From positions 50,396 to 91,922 of the forward strand of contig CALSCP010000245.1 of NCBI GenBank assembly GCA_943704425.1: 41,527 bases of DNA. Reading direction: 5' to 3'. The notes beneath the pieces were generated by a model. It saw nothing but the letters and a program-made list of their open reading frames with translations, had not been told where the DNA came from and searched no databases. The translations under genes and the position numbers were made by a program. The stretch comes from Ministeria vibrans ATCC 50519. Taxonomy: Eukaryota; Protista; Filasterea. Of the stretch, positions 6,007 to 41,527 are shown piece after piece (the stretch's first letter is position 1; every line of letters starts with the position of its first letter).

Positions 6007-7261
6007 TTACATTTGGAAAGAACCGCCCTGGCGCAACTGAGTCGCTTCCGAGCCGTCGTACGAGCTTGCAAGACGCGTCGAGCGCATTTCCATCATTTCG
6101 TCCTCTTGCTTGCGACCTCTGCGTGCCGACTTGGACGCCGAGGCTTTGTCGTTGTCGGAGCCGCGGCGTGCGCCGTGGTAAAGGTCGCGAGTGCGCAGAC
6201 CGGCCCAGGTGTAGATAAAGAGAGCTGCAAGGGCGCAGAGACCACCAATGAGCATGATGATGACAGACCAGCCTGACGTGCTCGTGCTGCCAAATGTACT
6301 CTGGTACGACGCCAGAAACACGGCCGCGCCCAGAATGGCAGCGACAGCGCCGCCAATGAGTGCACCCCCCACCTTGAACAGGGGCGCGCCGTACTTGGAG
6401 AACACCTTCTCAAAGTTGAGCGCCAACAGGCCCAGAATCACTCCAATAATCAGACACACGACGGCCATAACGCCAAGCACGCGGCCCGCCAGAATGGACA
6501 CGCCTGACAGCGATCCCGTGTTGAACAGTCCATATTTCGCTGAGTCGAAAAAAACAATCGAAGAATAAGAAGGGAAAGAACGAGTGCAGTGCAGATAGAG
6601 AGAGAGGAGAGAAAGCGAAAGAAAGAAAGAGGGGCGTTCGTCGTGGTCTGCGACACGGCAATGCGGGGATGGCAGCAGAGCAGGCAGGGCTGCAGTGGAG
6701 TACACAGAACGCAAAGGGTAACCGCAATTCCCATAAAACTGTGGGAACAAAAAAAAAACGAAACCCCGAGTGGTGCCTTGTTTGAAGCTGGATGGCAGCG
6801 TGTGTGGCATGTGGTCAAGACGAGAGCCAGCAGGAATACGGGCTGCATATCGAGCACAGAGAGCGAAACGGTTCGATTCGGTACGGACACTGTTTCACGA
6901 GGACCACACGCGTTGCGAGATACCCCACTTGACTCTCGTCGAGCCTTTGAGGCGTAGAGTTCAGTGTGTATATCGCTAGCACAGCGGGAAATCGCCAAGC
7001 GTCGGTTTTTTTTTTTTTTTATCTTTTATCTTTTATCATCTTGTCCCAAACGAAACACACACACAGACAGAGAGAGAGAGAGAGAGACACCAGACCCTGG
7101 TGCGACGTGGACAAGTACGTACCGCCAGAGGCCTGCGTGACCCACGAGGACGACGCAAGGCCGGCCAGGGCGCAGCAGGCACCCGTCAGAGTGAGCAGAA
7201 ACGCCACTCGGACCCAAGGCTTAATCTGTGCGCTCTGTTGTTGTCGACTCTCCAGACCCAT
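6007..7261 (-). CDS. Claudin/PMP22/EMP-like tetraspan membrane protein
   Basis: Exon 7261-7091 carries TM1 (VAFLLTLTGACCALAGLASSSW...HQGL). Probable micro-exon 6738-6723 (FYGNC). Exon 6539-6007 carries three more TMs, GWSVIIMLIGG before TM4, and a polar cytoplasmic tail. The W...GL[F/W]..C signature is restored by splicing. Confidence 0.75.
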
Positions 7262-7441
7262 CCTGGCACTTGTATCTTATTGCAGTCGACCAATCAACGC
7301 AATTTCTATTGAAATTTGATTTTGTTCAAGATTGATCTTTCCCTCGATTGATTGAATTGTGATTGAATCGTGATTGAATCGCTCGACACTCGTGAGTTGT
7401 GGCTCTCGCGAATAAAGCGATCAGATTCAGTTTGTTTGGTC

Positions 7442-7995
7442 ATGACGGAGCAGGTGGCACCCAACGCTGCGTGCATTGCCGCTGTCGATGCCGCGCTCGC
7501 AGCCAAGCCCGACGACGCCCAAGCAATAGCATCGCTGGCCGTCTGGGATGTCCTCTCCAAGTCGCAAATCGATACCCTGGCCATGGCTGGAGGTGAGGAC
7601 AGCACCACTGTGTCGCCTACACCCGTCTGCTTCGTCGCCCTTCCTTCCTTAGCGCCCAACGCACTGTCTTGTCGGTGGAAGTTTTTTTTTCTTTTTTTTT
7701 TTCTCGGTCAAAAGCGATTTTATCCATTGTCTGCCGTCGACTCCACGCTCTGCTGTGTCGCCTTCCTTCCGCTGATTCCACTGCGCATGCCTCTGTGGCG
7801 CGTCACCCTGCGCTCTGCGCTGTCGTGTGTTCTTTTGCTCAGCGTAGCGTCAACTCGATTCGTATCCATCGACGCCGATACGCCTTCGCTCCCTCCCAGT
7901 CCCTCTTACATACACACCTGTATTTCCTTGCAATCGCAGTCGATTTCAGGCATCTGCCGTGTCGCAACCCAAATCACTTACTTATCTCAGTTCTC

Positions 7996-8035
<40 letters not shown>

Positions 8036-8701
8036 CTTTTTTGCTCGCTTCTCCTTTCTCTAACTTCGAGGCGGTTTCTTTCTAGAAAAAATCCCCCGCT
8101 GCACTCTCTATGTGTTCACACACTCTATTCACATCTAATACATTCCTTCCTGTAGGCGGAACCGACATAGATTTCATTCTTTCCGTCGTCGAAATGTACT
8201 GCGACGAAGTCAAAAAATACTTTGCCAGCATGGAAATGGCCCTGTAAGACCCACATGGTCCACCGTGAATCGATATATAGATATCTATATATGTATATGC
8301 CGCTACCACGCGCGTTTACTCACGACCTTCTACTTTTCTCGTGTTGCCCTTTCGCCTTTGTGTCCTCGTTTGTTTTGATTTGCAGTGTTGTGAAGAATAT
8401 CAAACAGTTTGCCCAAAGTGCGCACACCATCAAAGGCTCGGCGGGCGCATCGGGTGCAGACAGAGTATCGAAGGCAGCCGAAGAAGTCAACAAGGCACTA
8501 AGACATGCAACCAACTTTGACGAGACGACGCGTGATTTGAGAAAAGATTTGGACACGCTCTATCGCGAACAGCGCATCTTTGTCAAAGTCTTTCACGCAA
8601 ACAAGGATGACTTCTTGAGTGACGACGAAGATGATGATGATGATGATGATGATGACGACGACGACGACGACGACGATGATGATGATGATGATGATGAGTA
8701 G
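7442..8701 (+). CDS. Histidine phosphotransfer (HPt) protein, Ypd1/RdeA-like, with poly-Asp tail
   Basis: Exons 7442-7592, 8156-8243 and 8386-8701 are phase-consistent. DIDFILSVVEMYCDEVKKYFASMEMAL...FAQSAHTIKGSAGASGADRVSKAAEEV contains the HPt H-x-x-KGS motif (His codon 8423-8425). Confidence 0.9.
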
Positions 8702-8880
8702 GGATGGTAATCAATAACAGTACAGTAGCAATAATAGACATGATCTTATTAGTATTAGATAAGAGATTCGTTTGTTTTCAGGTTTTCTTCTTCATTGTTC
8801 ACTCTTATTTAAGATATCACCTCTCAGGCACACGTTTTTCCTTGTTTTTCCCTGTTTTTTTTTTTTTTTTNNNNNNNNNN

Positions 8881-17381: not shown

Positions 17382-18070
17382 NNNNNNNNNNNNNNNNNNN
17401 NNNNNNNNNNNNNNNNNNNNNNNNNNNNNNNNNNNNNNNNNNNNNNNNNNNNNNNNNNNNNNNNNNNNNNNNNNNNNNNNNNNNNNNNNNNNNNNNNNNN
17501 NNNNNNNNNNNNNNNNNNNNNNNNNNNNNNNNNNNNNNNNNNNNNNNNNNNNNNNNNNNNNNNNNNNNNNNNNNNNNNNNNNNNNNNNNNNNNNNNNNNN
17601 NNNNNNNNNNNNNNNNNNNNNNNNNNNNNNNNNNNNNNNNNNNNNNNNNNNNNNNNNNNNNNNNNNNNNNNNNNNNNNNNNNNNNNNNNNNNNNNNNNNN
17701 NNNNNNNNNNNNNNNNNNNNNNNNNNNNNNNNNNNNNNNNNNNNNNNNNNNNNNNNNNNNNNNNNNNNNNNNNNNNNNNNNNNNNNNNNNNNNNNNNNNN
17801 NNNNNNNNNNNNNNNNNNNNNNNNNNNNNNNNNNNNNNNNNNNNNNNNNNNNNNNNNNNNNNNNNNNNNNNNNNNNNNNNNNNNNNNNNNNNNNNNNNNN
17901 NNNNNNNNNNNNNNNNNNNNNNNNNNNNNNNNNNNNNNNNNNNNNNNNNNNNNNNNNNNNNNNNNNNNNNNNNNNNNNNNNNNNNNNNNNNNNNNNNNNN
18001 NNNNNNNNNNNNNNNNNNNNNNNNNNNNNNNNNNNNNNNNNNNNNNNNNNNNNNNNNNNNNNNNNNNNNN
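17382..18070. other. Assembly gap (N-run) inside the filamin-like gene
   Basis: 689 N bases. Confidence 1.
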
Positions 18071-18133
18071 TTTTTTTTGAACTTTTTTTTTTTTTTTCTT
18101 TTCTTGTTCTTGTTTTTTTTTTTTTTCTTGTAG

Positions 18134-25607: not shown

Positions 25608-33456
<7,849 letters not shown>

Positions 33457-33571
33457 TTGTACAGTGTGAGTGAGAGTGCCCAATAAGAGGGATTAGAAAG
33501 ATCCGTGATTATAATACAGGTTATATAGTATATTTTTACATTTGCACACACACACACACACAAACTAAGCC

Positions 33572-33880
33572 TTAGGCAGTTTCGTCAATGGTCCGTTTCC
33601 GGCGGTGCGATACCAACTGCGAAGCATGCATGCGGTCAGAACGGCGACTTTTCCACACGTTGAACTCGAGAACGGCCAAATTTCCCGCATGAAACACTAA
33701 AATGGTATCGATTACTGAGATGACGAGCGACCGAAATCTGTTTTGTAGTACGTCGTTTTTCTAATGAATCCAGAATGCGCGTCAACTCGTTAATATCTTT
33801 GGTCTGGGAGTTTTGAGACAAGTCCATAATGCTTCGGTAGCGTTGAACAAATGCCTAAGGGACAACGAATGAACGAATGC

Positions 33881-33923
<43 letters not shown>

Positions 33924-34634
33924 TCTCCGATGAACAAAGTAAAAACTGACCTCTATGAGAGTTTTGACAATATCACTGCGTGCGCTGCCTTCCTGCTTCA
34001 TGATTGACGCGCAAGCAAGACCAAACTGATAGTAGTAAAAAGACCATTCGGCAAGATTGACCACCTGTGAGGAGCATTTGCACTGCACTGTCAACACACA
34101 ACTGGTGTGACTCATGTCTATCGTACGTTTGCGTCCGCTTTGAGAGATGCTCGGTAGCTCGACGTGTAGCACTTGGGCACTTCAACAAAGACAAAGTTGC
34201 TAATGAGAAGGTCAAGGCAAACAGACAAAAAAAAAATTCATTCAACGGTTTGTTTTCGGCGCCACTTCTTGAAATGGACGACAAGAGCCAGAAGTCGCAT
34301 GCGACGCCGGCTGAGTCGACGTACCTTTGGGCAATGGTCTCAATCATCCAGTAGGGCAGTTCGATTTTCGTGTCGGCGTCAATCTGACGAAGAGAGAAAG
34401 GTTGAGACGACTCTTTTTTTTTATTCGAGTTAGAGTTTTGAATTTTACGTCGTTTCCTTCCGAACTTGGGTTCAAGTGCCCAATGCCTTTCCCTCTGATA
34501 TTGAATACAACTGGTACAAGCTAAGGAGACGGGAAAACACAACGAGAGAGTGAGACGGAAGCATAAAGGAAAAAGTGAACAAGCAGCACCTCTTGCGACA
34601 TGAGAAGGTCATCGAGGCGGTAGTAGTTGGACAT
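33572..34634 (-). CDS. GINS3: DNA replication complex GINS subunit Psf3 (7 exons)
   Basis: Spliced: MSNYYRLDDLLMSQE|LVPVVFNIRGKGIGHLNPSSEGND|IDADTKIELPYWMIETIAQ|..VEVPKCY...LKADAN|VVNLAEWSFYYYQFG...|AFVQRYRSIMDLSQN...LDSLEKR|LFHAGNLAVLEFNVWK...ASQLVSHRRKR. Matches Psf3 throughout. Confidence 0.93.
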
Positions 34635-34823
34635 GGGCAAGTCGCAAGAGGGGAAATGGCCGAAATCGCAAATACAAAGGAAACTCAAAGAAAGTTGTGA
34701 CTTATGATCGAATCAATCGAATCATCAGTGTGCCATCAGTTCACCACTCGAACACACTTCGCTGTTGTGTTTCATTGTATTCTCTCTTTCTGAGTCTCAT
34801 CTGTCAATACTCTGTCGAGAATC

Positions 34824-35680
34824 ATGGTGTTCTGTACGCAGTGTGGAGCGGAAGGTTTGAAGAAAGCCATAAAAAGCCCTTTTCCCGTTCTCTCTCTTCG
34901 CTCTTGAGATCAAATATCCCCCCCCCCCCCCCCCCATCTCGCTCAACCTTTACAACCCGCGTGGCGTGTGTGTGTAGGAACGGGCAATTTCTGCGCGACG
35001 TGCGGGCACAGCCTGAAGGCGCCCAAGTCCAGCCGCGGCGCCGCCCCGCCTCGCCCGTCTGGCCGTGGTCCTGCTCCAAAACCGCCGGGGGCACCTGCGC
35101 CATCGACAGTTACTCATGATCCAAGTAGCGCCAGTGCCAGTGGGGTCACCAGTAAGCTGTTTTTGCGACGAGAGCGTCGGTTTTTTTTTTTTTTTTTTAT
35201 GGCACTGCAACTCTCGTTGAAAACACGTCTGTAGTTGCAAAAGACGACAGCTTCATGGAGCCTACGACGGCCGAGCAGTATGTGATTTTTGAAGGGACGA
35301 CATGGCCGTGTGGTCCGATCTCGTGGGCGTGCCACTCGTCGACGTACTGGCGGATTACGTACGGCGCATCAGCGGCAGCACAAAGCGCCCTCTTGACACT
35401 TCGCCTTTATTCCTATTTTCACAGGAACAAGCGCATTGACTACACGCATGGTTGCTGTGGCAACAACATGGACACGATTGATTTGCGTCGCGTGCGCGAC
35501 ATTGCGTGGGAGCGGTCCATGTTTCAGCTGTGCTGCCTACGCGGCACCCTTGTCATCTACGAGAATGGCTCGCAAGACCGACCCATTCGCCTGAGCACCT
35601 TCAATACCAAAGTCATTTTTCGTCGTCTGCGCGAAGCATGGTCTAAGGCACGCGTTGCCACGGCCATTGAGGCCTCTTAA
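34824..35680 (+). CDS. Zinc-ribbon plus bacterial-type PH (bPH_2/YdbS-like) domain protein
   Basis: Spliced MVFCTQCGAE|GTGNFCATCGHSL (CxxC..CxxC ribbon), a Pro-rich linker, then YWRIT|NKRIDYTHGCCGNNMDTIDLRRVRDIAWERSMFQLCCLRGTLVIY, fitting the bPH_2 pattern Y.lT..R....G......i.l.ri.dv....s..q....Gt..i. Confidence 0.75.
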
Positions 35681-35766
35681 AGCTAGAAAATGGGAGGGAG
35701 AGAGAGAGAGAGTGAGAGAATAAGTAATGAATTTTGAAGTGTATTTTATTTTAATCCGATTTTCTG

Positions 35767-37350
35767 CTATACAAGGGAGGTCTTGCGGCGGAGCAGGCGA
35801 CGGGAATCGCCGGTACAAGAGCGCTGGTGGATTTCGACGCGGGAGGCATCGCTAAAGCCTCGTCCACATCGGTCGCAGGGGACACGGTTGCCAAGGAAGG
35901 CAGCGAAGGCGGTGTCGTTGGCGCTGGCAAGCGAGGACGACGACGACGACGATGGACCTGTAGTTGTTGTGGAGTGGGGGTGGGTAGGGGCGGGCGGAGG
36001 GGCGCGGTTGTGCTCACGTGTGTACTTGGCCTGACACTGTGGAATGTGCAATGGTAGCGATGCAGAGCCATAGGGACGACCGCAGAGGTAGCACAGATGG
36101 CCAATGGCCGAGGAAGAAGGGGAACTTGTCTGAGGTCTTTTCGTAATGGGCGTCTTGGCAATGGTCGGGAGGGATGGTGTTGCATTGGGTGCAATGTGTG
36201 GACGAGTGAGTGTCTTATCCTGCCCTTGGGCCGAGGGAAGCGTTGCGGTGCTGGGCCGATCAGGAGTAGTATTAGTAGTAGTAGTAGTAGTAGTACTTGT
36301 AGTAGTAGTAGTAGTAGTAGCCGCGGTGGGCTTTGGGCCTTTGCAGCTGCGCTGGTGGACGGAAAGGCGTTCGGCAGAGGCAAAGCCGCGGGAGCAAAGC
36401 GGACAGGGGATGCGATTGGCCATGTACTGCGCAAACGCAGTGTCGTTGAGCTCGTGTTGTGTCTGTCCTCCGGCTGTGCTGGCACCAATGGGTCGCTCCG
36501 ACATCAAGCCGCGCGTCGGTTGGTCGTCAGTGGTGAGTCCAGGGACTTCGGGAAATGTGCGTCGCATTTCCGCGGGCAAATGTTCTTGTTCGCGTGCCCA
36601 TTTTTGGCGACAGTGAGGCAAATGGAGACGTAGCGAGGTCGTGCCATAGTTGCGACAACATCCGGGACAGAGCAGGCCCGCCGGACCGGAAGCAAAGCGT
36701 CGTTGGCGTGGGGATGTCGACCGCGGACGTACGGGTGGCGGCGTCTCGGTCGCGGGTGAGGTCTGTGCCAGTGGCTCGAGTGTCACGGCCCTCCCTCGAG
36801 AAGTACACGTAGAGCTAGTAGTGAGTGCATCAGCTGTTTTTGGACGGTTCATTGTGCTTGCGCTCCGTTTTGCCGAGAGACGTGGAGCAAGTTTGGCGGG
36901 ATTCGATGCTAGAAGAATTAATAAGAATAATAAAATTATTAACTTATTGTGAGTGTCATTGACAAATATGACAACTGCAGTTGGCTTGGTTGAGTACCGG
37001 TGCAGCTGCGTTGATGAACAGAGAGTCTCTCGGTGGCAAACGTGCGGCCGCAGTGCTCGCACGGTGCAAGTGCTTCGTTGTACGACTCGAAAGCAATATC
37101 GGCAAGCGCCGCGGTTGTCGGCTTCAGACCACGCTCCAAAGCGACTTCTTCTGGAGGACGTGGGAGCGGTCTTCTCTGGTGTTTTGGCAGACGAAGCTGC
37201 TCGCTAAAAGGCACATCACGTCCGTGAAAATCGTCACCATAGCAACGAATCGAAGTACATTTCAAATTTGCGCACACACTGCTTCAAATGTATATCAATA
37301 GATGCCTTGGAATAGTTGCGTCCACACACATGGCATATTACGATGCCTTT
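35767..37350 (-). CDS. ZNF474-like protein with three pairs of C2HC/C3H-type zinc fingers; 5' end at assembly gap
   Basis: Fingers CHVCGRNYSKASIDIHLKQC, PCEHCGRTFATERLSVHQRSC, CPGCCRNYGTTSLRLHLPHC, PCPLCSRGFASAERLSVHQRSC, CYLCGRPYGSASLPLHIPQC and PCDRCGRGFSDASRVEIHQRSC; two phase-consistent introns. A possible start ATG-GGG lies just across the 10-N gap (about 37371). Confidence 0.9.
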
Positions 37351-37651
37351 NNNNNNNNNNCCCCCCCCCATGCACTGTGAGGATCATTACTCCGTACTAC
37401 TCCAGTACTACTTCGTACGGAGGTACGGAGGTACGAAGTACACTGCCAGGGCGTCCGTTCTGGAACCCGACCACGGCCGAGCTCTACCTGCCGCCTCCGC
37501 TACCTAACTTGCACGAATACTGTCCCTCATCTCACCTTCTTGCGTAGTGACTGTATAATAATAAATGCGTTGTATTCTTCTTCTTCTTCCAATTACAAAT
37601 GCAAGATGTAATCTGTTCTATCGTATATGGCTCAAGCCAGAAGTGCTCGAA

Positions 37652-38353
37652 TTACACGCGGGTACTCGGAGGGCTCTCGCGTGCAGCGTCCACTGTGACC
37701 GGGAGAAAACTCGAGACCTTGGTTCCAATCTTTTTGTTCCACTTTTTTAGTAACTCTTCAAAAGAGTTCTTAACAAACTCGTCGAGGGTGCGAGGGAAGC
37801 TGAGGTTTTTCAAGGTCAAATCCGTTTTTGTTTCTTGCTGACAAGTGTCCTCCAAAGATCCGATGTCAGTGCTCCCGTCAACAAGTTTCCAATAAAGCGT
37901 TTCTTGCAATACCAGGGTCTGGTAGTATACGAGAAAATCAGAAAATATATCAGGAAACTTTTCGGTATTAGCCAGGTAACTGTGCTTCAGGATAACGTCA
38001 GATATTTGCTTAAGCAGGGGCATATTCGACTGCTTCATCCAATTAATATACGCACGTGTAACATAGGGCTCTTGAGGCGTTGCCGAGGTTTTCCAAGAGG
38101 GATATTTAGTCACGAACACAGCATATGCATCTCCGGAAGCCTTGAGGAGAACATATAATGGTCCATACAAGCACTTCAATTGACGCTCGATGTGGTCCAG
38201 TCGACTTTGTTCCTTACTTGCCTTCCGAGATAACTCATGCGGAATACAATAACTACAAGAGCCAATGAAGGCGGCAACAACAGCCGCGACGAACAAACTC
38301 CAATTGAACGATGCATCTTGCTGCGTTAAAACAATGTGACAGGTTGCATTCAT
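37652..38353 (-). CDS. Hypothetical single-TM alpha-helical protein resembling a bacterial uncharacterised family; divergent partner of the CD-NTase
   Basis: Intronless 233-aa ORF from ATG 38353 (open frame extends to 38512). TM FNWSLFVAAVVAAFIGSCSYCI, then RLDHIERQLKCLYGPLYVLL...W...NMPLLKQISDVILKHSYL...FPDIF..F..YY...W...SFP..L...V...FEEL. I recall this pattern from bacterial and algal hypothetical proteins; not verified by search. Confidence 0.7.
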   Translation of the reverse strand: MNATCHIVLTQQDASFNWSLFVAAVVAAFIGSCSYCIPHELSRKASKEQSRLDHIERQLKCLYGPLYVLLKASGDAYAVFVTKYPSWKTSATPQEPYVTRAYINWMKQSNMPLLKQISDVILKHSYLANTEKFPDIFSDFLVYYQTLVLQETLYWKLVDGSTDIGSLEDTCQQETKTDLTLKNLSFPRTLDEFVKNSFEELLKKWNKKIGTKVSSFLPVTVDAARESPPSTRV

Positions 38354-39375
38354 TGAATCCAGCGTGATTGACCTAAATTCAACATTGAAGTGGTGCAGGC
38401 ACCAATGTGAGAGAGTTGGCAATGTAATACCAGGCGTAGTTGCCTGGATTTCTGGCTGGACACAAACAAAGAAACGACAAAACGACTGACCCAAAAAAAA
38501 CGACTGACCCAAAAAAAAAGGAAAAAGAACTGCAACATAGAAAAAACGGCAAATCGATGTGCTCTCAATATCTCAAACGCCCAAACCGTTACAGCAGACC
38601 TCAAATTGATAAAAATGAGGGGAAATTGTCGCGGTGGATCGGTTGTCTTGTGGTAATCGGAAAGCGCCTCAATGCAGAAACACCATCTCTTCACACAGTT
38701 GTATCTGTATCCATGTACGTAGTACTTACGGGATATTTAGTCGGTCTCAACTATGCACGATTCTGGCCTTATACTTACTAAAAAGATTGCTTTGGAGTTT
38801 GGCCTTTGAGACTTGAGTTTTGACTTTTGACTTTTGAGTTTTGACCGCCTTCAGCGGCGATAATCGTATACTGTGTAATGGGCTTTTTTTAAAGAATCCC
38901 TTCAGCAAACGCAGCATTTTGCCGATATTACTCTCTGGTAACGAAAGGCGTTTGAAAAGACACGTTCTCGAGACGTCGGAGACGATATGAGACGTCAAAA
39001 GGTTGTAAACCTGAAGAAGTAACCTCAAGATTTTCAAGCTCCGTACTCAAGAGCGCGAGTGTAGTGACTGTAGTCACTACCACTCACTGTAGTGGAGACA
39101 CATGACCCCGATCACCCCATGTTCTATATAACGTCTATTAGCAGTCTTTGAACAGTCTTTACAACCTTTGCTAGCCACGACTAAAGCAAGCGTTTGAAAG
39201 GGCTAAGCGCCACCCTTAATAGTATGTCCCTTATACTACAGCTTACAGTACTGAACATTACCTTACGTATTCAACTCAACGTAAGGTGTTACGTAAATGT
39301 TTCCTTACTACTTCTCACAAACAGTCAAAATACGAGGAGTAATCAAATTTCAGTATTTCCACGCTTCTCTGTACC

Positions 39376-40351
39376 ATGTTGACTCCCAGTCAGCGGTTTT
39401 GCAGACTTCAAGAGAGAATTGAGCCTCAAGGTGAGCAAGACTGCGATCTTACGGCAACAGAATCGAAAAAACCCCTTTCATTTAACACCCAGATGATAAA
39501 TGAGTGTCAGCCAATCAACCTAAGTCCACTCTTTCCTTGTATGTACTGCCTCAGAGGGAAGAGCAGCTCACTTTCATGCACGTGTGCGTGAGATTTTGCT
39601 GAAATTTGATTTTGTTGAAGGTACGAGCCTCGTCGGCTCGTATGCGCGAAATACAGCTATTGCGGCCACTAGTGATATCGATATCCTTGTCTATGTCAAG
39701 GGCGATGCTCTTGGATACTCTTCGCATCGTTCAGTTGATCGCCTACGACGCAACTTACGAGAAATTGGAGGTGTCAACTGTGTTGGCAAATTGAAACAAT
39801 CCGTTTGCATCGCTTTCAACGAAGCAGATGTCACCATTGACCTCATCCCAGCTGTGGAGTGTGGGGACGGCATTGCGATTCCGGATAGCGATGAGATGGG
39901 GTGGATTTACTCCAACCCGAGAGCAGCGACGGAAAAAATTCAACAGGCCACCAAACAACTCGACAGCAGTGCCCACCTGCGCAAGCTCATCAAACTCCTG
40001 AAGCACTGGAACCACCTTCACGAAGAAGACAATTCAAAGCCTCTGAAGAGCTTTCACCTCGAGCTGATGTGCTACGACTTCAAGTCTTTTGCAGAAGACG
40101 ATCGAAGATGCTTTGCAGAACTCCTGCGCCACGTGAGCTGTGCCGTAAAATGCCACATTGACGCACCGGGAGTGCCAGGCGAAGACGTTAGCTCATATCT
40201 CGACGAGCCGAACTGCAAGCTTCGTCGTGACCGAGTTGCAGAGCTTCTGGAACAGGCTGTGCAAGATAGCGAGGCAGCCGTTGAGGCCGAGGAGCGTGGA
40301 GATTACGCCGCCGCTCATCGCCGCTGGACACGTGTTTTTATTGACTATTGA
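39376..40351 (+). CDS. SMODS/CD-NTase (cGAS/DncV-like) cyclic oligonucleotide synthase of bacterial CBASS type, 283 aa, 2 exons
   Basis: Exon 39376-39430, GTGAG...CTCAG intron 39431-39554 and exon 39555-40351 give MLTPSQRFCRLQERIEPQEGRAAHFHARVREIL. Pol-beta NTase motifs GSYARNTAI..SDIDIL and third acidic residue in IDLIPA. CD-NTase motifs IPD...W..SNP, LIKLLKHWN, KPLKSFHLELM, DAPG and A...W..VF at the C-terminus. Confidence 0.9.
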
Positions 40352-41471
40352 CAGTTTTCCAGCTCATTAGTCTAGAGAAAAACGGACTCACTCACACACG
40401 CATTCTCCCTCTCTGCTGCTCATCCACTTTCAAACTCTCTTGCTCCGTCTCCCTCACCCACTCCATTGGAGTCTGACTCTCGCGCTTACTCTCTTGTTCG
40501 TGCTGCAACGAGGGCTATTCTATCTGATCGAGCGAGGCAGACAATGGCCGACCGTAGGGAGAGGGGTGGCTTATCTGTCACGCCACCCGCAGCCACAAAA
40601 TGACCATTATTCTGTGCTCTCCCTAGCCCTTCTCTGCCTCTGCTTCTGTCTCGCCTGGCTATTCTCCCCAACTACAACCTCCCTCCTTCTCTCGCTCATT
40701 CTTTAGCCTCTCTCGCTCTCGCATGCCTCATTTTCTTTGAAGCGTACTCGATCAATTCCGCCTCTATAATCTCCCAAGAAGTGTCACCATCGTTGTCTCG
40801 TCGTGAATGACACTTCCTCGCCACCTCCACCCTCTGCTCCTTCTTCACCCTCCAAGCGCCGTCGACTCATCATGTCCGCCTCACCCAGCCAGGCGAGCCA
40901 TCCCTCTCTGGTCCACCCAGCCAGTTCTCTCTGCCTCGCCTGGCGTTGGCCCCTTTGACCAGCTCTCGCTTTTATTGTTTGGAAGTCCAGGGTAGTAGTT
41001 TCATTGTACAAGACAATCAATCTAACGACCCGATGCGGCTGCTCCGCCTTTCGCTCTCTTACCCTGCTCCTCAAATAAAACATTTTCTCTGTGACGCAAC
41101 GCATTTTTAAATCATTCAAAGCACGCGTCGACACGGTCCATCCAGTGTGGTTCTGATGCAGGCGGTGACATGCTTCTTCCATGCTTTTTTGATATGCGTT
41201 GCAACTACCTCGAGACGGTCGCGAACACTATCTCCCAGCACCGTCAGCGTCCCCCATGCTTTACGTGAATAACGTGATGGTCATCCTGGTCATTCTTGAG
41301 GCATACAGTCGCTGCATGAACCACGAGCATGTGCTCGACGATGATCAGGCGCTCTTTGACACAGAGCCAGAGTACCTGCCCTCTGATGAGCTCGTCAACT
41401 CACCGAAAACTCACCCCCACAGGAAACCTCTTCAAAACCCCCACTCTTCTCTGTCTCCCCCTCGCCCACTC

Positions 41472-41477
<6 letters not shown>

Positions 41478-41527
<50 letters not shown>
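41478..41527 (+). repeat. (CT)n microsatellite at window end
   Basis: CT run of the same type as in host introns; supports host origin of the distal segment. Confidence 0.9.

Follow-up and report, generated by a model that had tools for sequence, protein, structure and literature searches.

A single-copy, spliced and expressed eSMODS cyclase gene on a chromosomal contig of Ministeria vibrans, in a genome with no recognisable SAVED gene

The closest described relatives of the gene reported here are the eSMODS, a eukaryotic CD-NTase superfamily that Culbertson and Levin placed within bacterial clade D and called uncharacterised (PLoS Biol 2023, PMC10732462). In that work, a protein is assigned to eSMODS when SMODS is its top Pfam domain and is accompanied by NTP_transf_2; the known hosts are Amoebozoa, choanoflagellates, Ancyromonadida, and one sponge (PMC10732462). 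The characterised enzymes of clade D make cyclic trinucleotides, and the authors suggest, as a speculation, a range of cyclic di- or tri-nucleotides as eSMODS products (PMC10732462). In the portion of the published catalogue covered here, the eSMODS-positive species all stand on the transcriptome list; the authors caution that transcriptome-only data cannot fully exclude symbionts, and their paper contains no analysis of introns, SAVED domains, or gene neighbourhood (PMC10732462). We describe an eSMODS gene in a stretch of 41,527 nucleotides from Ministeria vibrans ATCC 50519, hereafter the window, which covers positions 50396-91922 of contig CALSCP010000245.1 (C245; 98,129 bp) in a genome assembly of 29.7 Mb and 2,860 contigs. 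The gene is eukaryotic: chromosomal, spliced, and expressed. We put at about 0.8 the probability of our overall reading, that this is a single-copy, integrated, transcribed, and spliced eSMODS gene that came by horizontal transfer from the clade-D-like cyclases of the cyclic-oligonucleotide-based antiphage signalling system (CBASS).

The cyclase gene occupies positions 39376-40351 of the window and is built from two exons:

39376-39430, forward strand: exon 1, beginning with an ATG start; its 18 codons and one extra nucleotide code for the N-terminal helix (M.T..QRF.....RI.P)
39431-39554, forward strand: spliceosomal intron of 124 nt, GTGAGC...CTCAG, phase 1, 43.5% GC
39555-40351, forward strand: exon 2, with the other 264 CD-NTase codons and a TGA stop

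The coding length of 55 + 797 nt corresponds to 283 codons and the stop (TGA at 40349-40351), and the product is 283 aa long. The ATG at 39376 is the first start codon 3' of an upstream in-frame stop, with no other start between the two. Compared with the N-terminus of the nearest relative (P0004), the exon 1 peptide shows 8 identities in 17 positions (E 8e-4, in a single comparison).

Four public sequencing runs were aligned over 37000-41000 as Logan contigs; our assignment of X6 and X7 (2025) to RNA is a guess, and X1 is a DNA run. The coverage of X6 and X7 is RNA-like, with no cover over 37000-37535, low cover between the cyclase gene and a divergent neighbouring gene described below, and the joined form of the exons alone. 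Contigs of both runs begin at 39378, join 39428 to 39553 (a cut that can be shifted by +2, to 39430/39555), and omit 124 nt with GT..AG ends; the contig of X1 is colinear across the intron. The X6 contig, 2001 nt long, comprises 51 nt of exon 1, 1448 nt up to 41000, and a further 502 nt past 41000. A run from 2011 (X11) yields low-depth fragments over both the cyclase gene and its neighbour. Transcription of the cyclase gene is recorded in runs of two studies. Beyond the coding region the transcript continues into one more feature:

40352-41500, forward strand: probable long, CT-rich 3' untranslated region; the transcript contig ends at a CT microsatellite

Because the contigs are strandless, this stretch may overlap a convergent transcript. 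More widely, the window is present in whole or in part in 14 public-run rows from 6 studies, with at least half of its words in 10 of the 14, and the DNA contigs are colinear in two independent studies.

An earlier note on this DNA, made from the letters alone, had proposed a 124-nt GTGAG..CTCAG intron that joins an 18-codon exon in frame, and this proved exact: X6 and X7 contigs cross the 39430/39555 junction where the note had suggested looking for spliced reads, and the DNA run X1 keeps the intron. Its view that exon 1 restores the N-terminal helix typical of CD-NTases is borne out by the identities shared with the nearest relative, and its argument that an intron speaks against bacterial contamination gains from both the splicing and the eukaryotic genes on either side in the 98-kb contig. 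An intron is lacking at this position in three relatives (L003, L005, and L013), so the intron of the window cyclase was probably gained after the transfer.

The product is a cGAS/DncV-like nucleotidyltransferase with a CD-NTase fold and an intact GS, DxD, and D catalytic set. In all searches the exons were handled separately rather than joined, exon 2 as 39557-40348 (264 residues) and exon 1 as its 18 codons. Against Pfam, exon 2 is matched best by SMODS (PF18144, 5.6e-11), followed by NTP_transf_2 (PF01909, 2.1e-6) and Polbeta (0.0016); OAS1_C stays below the Pfam threshold (0.063; 13.3 bits, where 19.9 are required). The Mab-21 domain of Pfam has no match in exon 2. The PADLOC oligonucleotide-cyclase model PDLC00823 reaches 5e-45 over 240 of its 285 profile positions, 44 more cyclase models match as well, and CBASS_cyclase_b of NCBIfam gives 6e-33; matches of this size lie well outside what chance would give. 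Among solved structures searched by sequence, the best is CdnD of P. aeruginosa (6P8U/6P82, 6e-15), with CdnC next (2e-5). An AlphaFold model of exon 2, built on an alignment with 72 relatives, has a predicted local distance difference test score (pLDDT) of 93.9 and a predicted template modelling score (pTM) of 0.90. The modelled fold is two-lobed, with a predicted nucleotidyltransferase core and a C-terminal helical lobe, and the top Foldseek matches are all CD-NTases: CdnD comes first (template modelling score, TM, 0.82; E 2e-16), and CdnB, CdnC, DncV, CdnE, and CdnG are also matched. These family scores, together with top fold matches that are CD-NTases only, rule out that the protein is an OAS, a cGLR, a CCA-adding enzyme, or a poly(A) polymerase. 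The motifs that carry the family assignment lie in exon 2:

39635-39682, forward strand: catalytic G-S (exon-2 residues 27-28) and D-x-D (residues 40 and 42), in columns 95-99% conserved in alignments A1 and A3 and kept here
39839-39841, forward strand: third catalytic Asp, exon-2 residue 95 in TIDLIPA, invariant in A1 and 97% conserved in A3
40037-40075, forward strand: family signature KPLKSFHLELMCY (exon-2 residues 161-173), the clade consensus, also present in the published Cunea and Armaparvus eSMODS

In an alignment with P. aeruginosa CdnD, the GS and DID of the window cyclase fall opposite the GS and DID (D62/D64) of that enzyme. Of the columns at least 85% conserved in the clade to which the protein belongs, 26 of 29 are kept, all the catalytic ones included.

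A phmmer search of 1.84 billion cluster representatives returned 739 relatives, the best of them P0004 at 38% identity and 1.5e-31. In a tree of the 86 best matches, the window protein stands beside P0004 inside a 23-member clade (SH-aLRT 95) that holds published eSMODS of Armaparvus languidus (P0040, which is P005138), Cunea sp. (P0058, which is P010115), and Oscarella pearsei (P0036, which is P025570). The clade-wide signatures are KPLKSFHLE(V/L)MCY, LIKLLKxWN, GSYxRxTA, and TFDVVPA. At the level of sequence, the window gene belongs to the eSMODS superfamily, and it is the one SMODS gene of the 29.7-Mb genome. Across 185,579 prokaryote species, taken at one genome each, the signature motif occurs in five matching stretches, three of which encode a relative. 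As for a virus as the vector, no relative turned up when IMG/VR was scanned for the family motifs.

The earlier reading of the family has held up. Each of the motifs it listed (GS, DxD, the third Asp in IDLIPA, LIKLLKHWN, KSFHLELM, and W..VF) is present, and its preference for a bacterial-type CD-NTase/SMODS enzyme over OAS or cGAS-Mab21 agrees with the SMODS, PDLC00823, and CBASS_cyclase_b scores. In the comparison of profile hidden Markov models (HMMs) that it recommended, SMODS leads, OAS1_C (0.063) and a CCA-adding model (0.0016) remain sub-threshold, and Mab-21 has no match. The remark that scattered eukaryotic SMODS had already been reported was right; these are the eSMODS, to which the window protein is assigned here. 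On the phylogeny it called for, trees of 86 and 46 rows were built, and the protein grouped with eSMODS at SH-aLRT 95 in the first, quick tree and weakly, at 75/49, in the second.

Relatives of the window cyclase indicate what kind of system it came from. Among nine signature-bearing loci with flanking DNA, a SAVED-domain gene adjoins the cyclase in seven:

L003: SAVED gene divergent from the cyclase (SAVED E 1.2e-9)
L005: SAVED gene convergent with the cyclase (SAVED E 3.4e-4)
L011: partial SAVED gene (E 0.027)
L013: gene with patatin and SAVED (SAVED E 1.6e-5)
L035 and L043: SAVED proteins of about 610 aa (E 4.8e-20)
L083: two cyclase-SAVED pairs, with weaker SAVED pieces

Several of these effectors carry an N-terminal membrane segment. 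In the remaining two loci (L022 and L030), no SAVED was found among the open reading frames (ORFs) tested. L005, L011, L013, L035, L043, and L083 are metagenome contigs, in which the SAVED gene usually lies tail to tail with the cyclase. L003, the contig of the nearest relative (Logan contig SRR16126897_130296, 1-2831), is clearly eukaryotic: its eSMODS gene lies at 1599-2437 on the forward strand and its SAVED gene at 3-623 on the reverse strand, the latter with an upstream exon that encodes a membrane segment (about 1213-1415) and is set off by an intron (about 430 nt, 26% GC) that reads GTGAGT...TTTTGCAG. Single-base frame shifts, all at homopolymer runs, interrupt both genes of L003 and also occur in L022; they are probably sequencing errors.

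The nearest bacterial locus with the signature is that of Comamonas sp. KCTC 72670 (L014, BNCN01000020.1), where the cyclase is followed by a 609-aa SAVED protein (8.5e-18) and no HORMA or Trip13 gene stands beside it. The surrounding row resembles a defence island, with a kinase-nSTAND NTPase, an ECF sigma factor, a Ser/Thr kinase, and a RAMP protein. Given the recurrent SAVED linkage among relatives and the intron-bearing SAVED gene on the eukaryotic contig L003, eukaryotes seem to have gained whole CBASS-like cassettes and not the cyclase alone.

The Ministeria locus departs from this arrangement. No SAVED was found in this genome with the Pfam model, with the L003 protein, or with a profile of four relatives' SAVED domains, nor by an unfiltered hmmsearch of window positions 30000-41527 and the rest of the contig. 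The linkage typical of CBASS, between a cyclase and a cyclic-nucleotide-activated effector (SAVED, STING, patatin, a TM effector, or an endonuclease, for example), is not recognisable at the window locus. A local search found no HORMA or Trip13-like genes in the window or in the 7 kb downstream. What adjoins the cyclase is a divergent gene across a short spacer:

37652-38353, reverse strand: divergent neighbour, an orphan; intronless; its first ATG opens a frame for 233 aa, which comprise a single transmembrane helix near the N-terminus and a body predicted to be all-helical
38753-39375, no strand: spacer between the divergent transcripts, a presumed shared promoter; AT-rich, 42% GC, with low-depth contigs alone in between

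This neighbour is a candidate partner of the cyclase. It is single copy in the genome and, like the cyclase, is transcribed in X6 and X7, where an unspliced contig covers 37548-38739/52. Its transcript contigs stop at 38739/38752, about 0.5 kb from the cyclase contigs, which begin at or before 39378. The neighbour protein has no usable match in Pfam (E up to 10), PADLOC, PHROGs, or a k-mer protein search, and BLASTP finds no similarity between it and the SAVED protein of a relative. Its single-sequence AlphaFold model has a pLDDT of 37 and is unfit for a fold search. The nearest ESM Atlas entries are unnamed bacterial and giant-virus clusters of small proteins, at 0.92-0.95. A pointer from the same atlas to DUF4760 is an unsupported lead, the DUF4760 HMM having no match in the protein.

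The mRNA leader of the neighbour is about 400 nt long (38354-38752, reverse strand) and has several short upstream ORFs, including one of 62 codons that shares bases of its TGA stop with the main start codon (ATGA). Runs X6 and X7 lack an 18-nt tandem-repeat unit at 38479, which makes the leader polymorphic in length. Within the spacer, short alternative X1 contigs share about 90 nt with 39238-39325 at 2-3 mismatches and diverge on both sides, and a 36-mer inside this segment has a depth of 427 in X1. The segment looks like a small dispersed repeat in the presumed shared promoter region, and this repeat would explain why contigs break in the spacer.

Elsewhere in the same genome, a second nucleotide-signalling pair is found. 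On contig C2136 at 6689-8739 (L004, L009, and L010), the gene of a 347-aa transmembrane STING (TM-STING; STING_LBD 1e-25) is arranged head to head with an ORF of the cGLR/Mab-21 type. The cGLR ORF carries GS, DFD, and VDLVP motifs, and the first ATGs of the two genes are about 20 bp apart (7732 and 7753). From this pair it follows that the organism places synthase and receptor genes together, and also that its STING already has a synthase of its own. For Capsaspora, the published catalogue records none of cGLR, STING, and eSMODS, all of which are present in this genome.

The wider setting is eukaryotic. Flanking genes encode a GH3/PA14 glycosidase, a filamin-MFS protein, a KDM5-type JmjC demethylase, a RhoGEF, and a zf-C2HC protein, and a gamma-glutamyltranspeptidase-like ORF lies on the downstream flank. 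Reading by eye, we take a flanking protein of 1,560 aa to be FANCD2-like and a downstream protein of 977 aa to be cadherin-repeat-like. Bacterial promoter and terminator motifs are not in excess. The cyclase and its neighbour share a stretch of 45% GC, and their GC content at third codon positions (GC3) is 0.51 and 0.50, respectively, compared with 0.61-0.75 for most flanking genes.

The left edge of this two-gene island has several peculiarities. The k-mer depth in X1 is 325 over 37000-37350 and 170 over 37364-41000, and 36750-37350 is single copy in the assembly; the island may be hemizygous or may have a very divergent second haplotype. Within 37351-37372, a gap of 10 N (37351-37360) is followed by a run of nine C. 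The X1 contig goes on past 37350 with 36 or more letters not present in the window, and sequence is therefore missing at this edge. On the other side, an N run of about 1.16 kb begins 2-3 nt past the window end (L002, about 925-2085), 1.2 kb downstream of the cyclase stop. Another N run covers about 17400-18100 of the window. Both runs directly follow CT/GA microsatellites and may be assembly gaps.

How the signal of such a cyclase might be read, if there is one, separates most of the alternatives. The cyclase and its membrane-anchored neighbour could form a two-gene signalling module in which the neighbour has replaced SAVED as receptor or executor. The head-to-head order with its gap of about 0.5 kb, transcription in the same runs, and the common GC3 near 0.50 in a low-GC stretch all suit this idea, as does the habit of relatives to keep an effector gene directly by the cyclase, several of them with an N-terminal membrane segment; the cGLR and STING genes offer a precedent in the same genome, and the ESM Atlas points to bacterial and giant-virus proteins. 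We nevertheless hold such a module to be unlikely, as two adjoining genes are weak evidence in a eukaryote and the neighbour itself has no homologue, domain, or defence-model match, is unlike the SAVED proteins of relatives, gives an unusable structure model, and has in DUF4760 a lead that lacks HMM backing. Taken further, the same idea would make the locus a CBASS variant assembled by a eukaryote, with SAVED swapped for an unrelated transmembrane receptor or executor on a low-GC island that is maybe at half the depth of its flanks; this we consider improbable. No less improbable is an expressed relic, that is, a cassette that lost its SAVED effector and left a cyclase that persists without a pathway and is decaying. 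The failure to find SAVED anywhere in the assembly, the single copy in a low-GC, island-like stretch, and the change of three conserved columns are what a relic would lead one to expect, whereas the frame is open, the catalytic residues are intact, 26 of 29 conserved columns survive at 38% identity to the nearest relative, and a gained intron is accurately spliced in a gene expressed in runs of two studies.

Several cyclic dinucleotides of bacterial type are bound by STING proteins, and with a TM-STING in the genome the cyclase might supply it as a second source of cyclic dinucleotide beside cGLR, in keeping with the published speculation that eSMODS products vary. We think this very unlikely: STING already sits head to head with cGLR on another contig, cyclic trinucleotides, the products of the characterised clade-D enzymes, are not known to be recognised by STING, and the partners of relatives are SAVED proteins and not STING. 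Least credible by far is that the segment is a contaminant, or that the protein is a nucleotidyltransferase of some other family (OAS, cGLR/Mab21, CCA-adding enzyme, poly(A) polymerase, or MNT antitoxin). Sub-threshold scores for OAS1_C (0.063), an archaeal CCA-adding enzyme (0.0016), and MntA (0.032) point that way, but the SMODS and CBASS models are ahead by 25 to 40 orders of magnitude and the top fold matches all belong to CD-NTases. As to contamination, it is excluded by the removal of a spliceosomal intron in the RNA-like runs; the 98-kb contig with eukaryotic genes on both sides, the colinear DNA contigs of two independent studies, and the lack of excess bacterial promoter or terminator motifs tell against it as well.

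Several points also weigh against the reading that we prefer, an eSMODS gene gained by horizontal transfer from clade-D-like cyclases. The NCBIfam scores of exon 2 are far under the equivalog cut-offs, and three conserved columns are changed (P37A, Q79L, and T119S, the last being the Ser of WIYSNP that the earlier note proposed as a possible lid residue favouring purine substrates, in a column that is Thr in 85% of 20 relatives). In the more careful tree of 46 rows, the same grouping returns at a weak 75/49 and the Comamonas sp. KCTC 72670 locus falls on the other side; with clade support at this level, the eukaryotic members may go back to one transfer or to several. The clade members L013, L035, and L043 may be bacterial. 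A literature search turned up no functional study of any eSMODS, and the cyclase activity of the window protein is itself a prediction from sequence. A cyclase with no recognisable receptor gene could be an expressed orphan, and a missing partner gene could hide in the 10-N gap at 37351-37360 or in the N run of about 1.16 kb.

On the preferred reading, of a functional eSMODS gene of bacterial origin, the eSMODS lineage would branch among bacterial clade-D-like CBASS cyclases and would have entered eukaryotes by horizontal transfer. The ancestral cassette would have paired a cyclase with a SAVED effector, the arrangement seen in the nearest bacterial locus and among most relatives. When triggered, the cyclase would still condense nucleoside triphosphates into a cyclic di- or tri-nucleotide messenger, and it would probably serve cell-autonomous defence in doing so. 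The SAVED receptor would have been lost or replaced in this genome, with the membrane-anchored neighbour and STING as candidates for reading the signal.

The kind of gene has been known since eSMODS were described in 2023 (PMC10732462), and the window gene adds proof at the level of chromosome, intron, and expression. Since eSMODS were apparently defined mostly from transcriptomes, the locus stands as chromosome-level proof of a eukaryotic eSMODS. Also new are the repeated finding of SAVED beside the cyclase in relatives, once as a eukaryotic gene with an intron, and the apparent loss or replacement of SAVED in this genome. A cyclase without SAVED, in a cell that has a separate cGLR-STING pair, provides a tractable place to study what reads the signal after receptor loss. 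If SAVED has indeed been swapped for the neighbour, the locus would reveal a previously unseen class of eukaryotic cyclic-oligonucleotide receptor, parallel to the cGLR-STING pair of the same cell.

Four described systems frame the locus. The best solved structure is CdnD of P. aeruginosa ATCC27853 (6P82/6P8U/6P8J), a clade-D cyclase of type III CBASS that resembles the window cyclase in sequence (6e-15), in fold (TM 0.82), and in the alignment of GS, DxD, and the third Asp; the two are only 25% identical, and CdnD acts together with HORMA, Trip13, and the NucC nuclease from an operon that has no counterpart at the window locus. Minimal (type I) CBASS, a cyclase with a SAVED effector, is the architecture of the Comamonas locus and of seven of the nine signature-bearing relatives, in which TM-SAVED, patatin-SAVED, or roughly 610-aa SAVED proteins take the effector role. 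The window locus differs in that the gene adjoining its cyclase has neither SAVED nor a known effector domain, and in that its genes are monocistronic and divergent, with eukaryotic untranslated regions and, in one of them, an intron. With the animal-type cGLR-STING pathway the window cyclase shares the fold of the enzyme superfamily and, as predicted, the logic of a nucleotide second messenger and its receptor; it differs in being much smaller and bacterial-like, in having no Mab-21 domain, and in lying on another contig than the cGLR-STING pair of this genome. Closest of all are the published eSMODS (PMC10732462), with which it has in common the top domains SMODS, NTP_transf_2, and Polbeta, a clade of Armaparvus, Cunea, and Oscarella sequences in the 86-row tree, the KPLKSFHLE(V/L)MCY signature, and an affinity to bacterial clade D. 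It is set apart from them by 38% identity to its nearest relative and by its place on a long genomic contig, with a proven intron and a known gene context.

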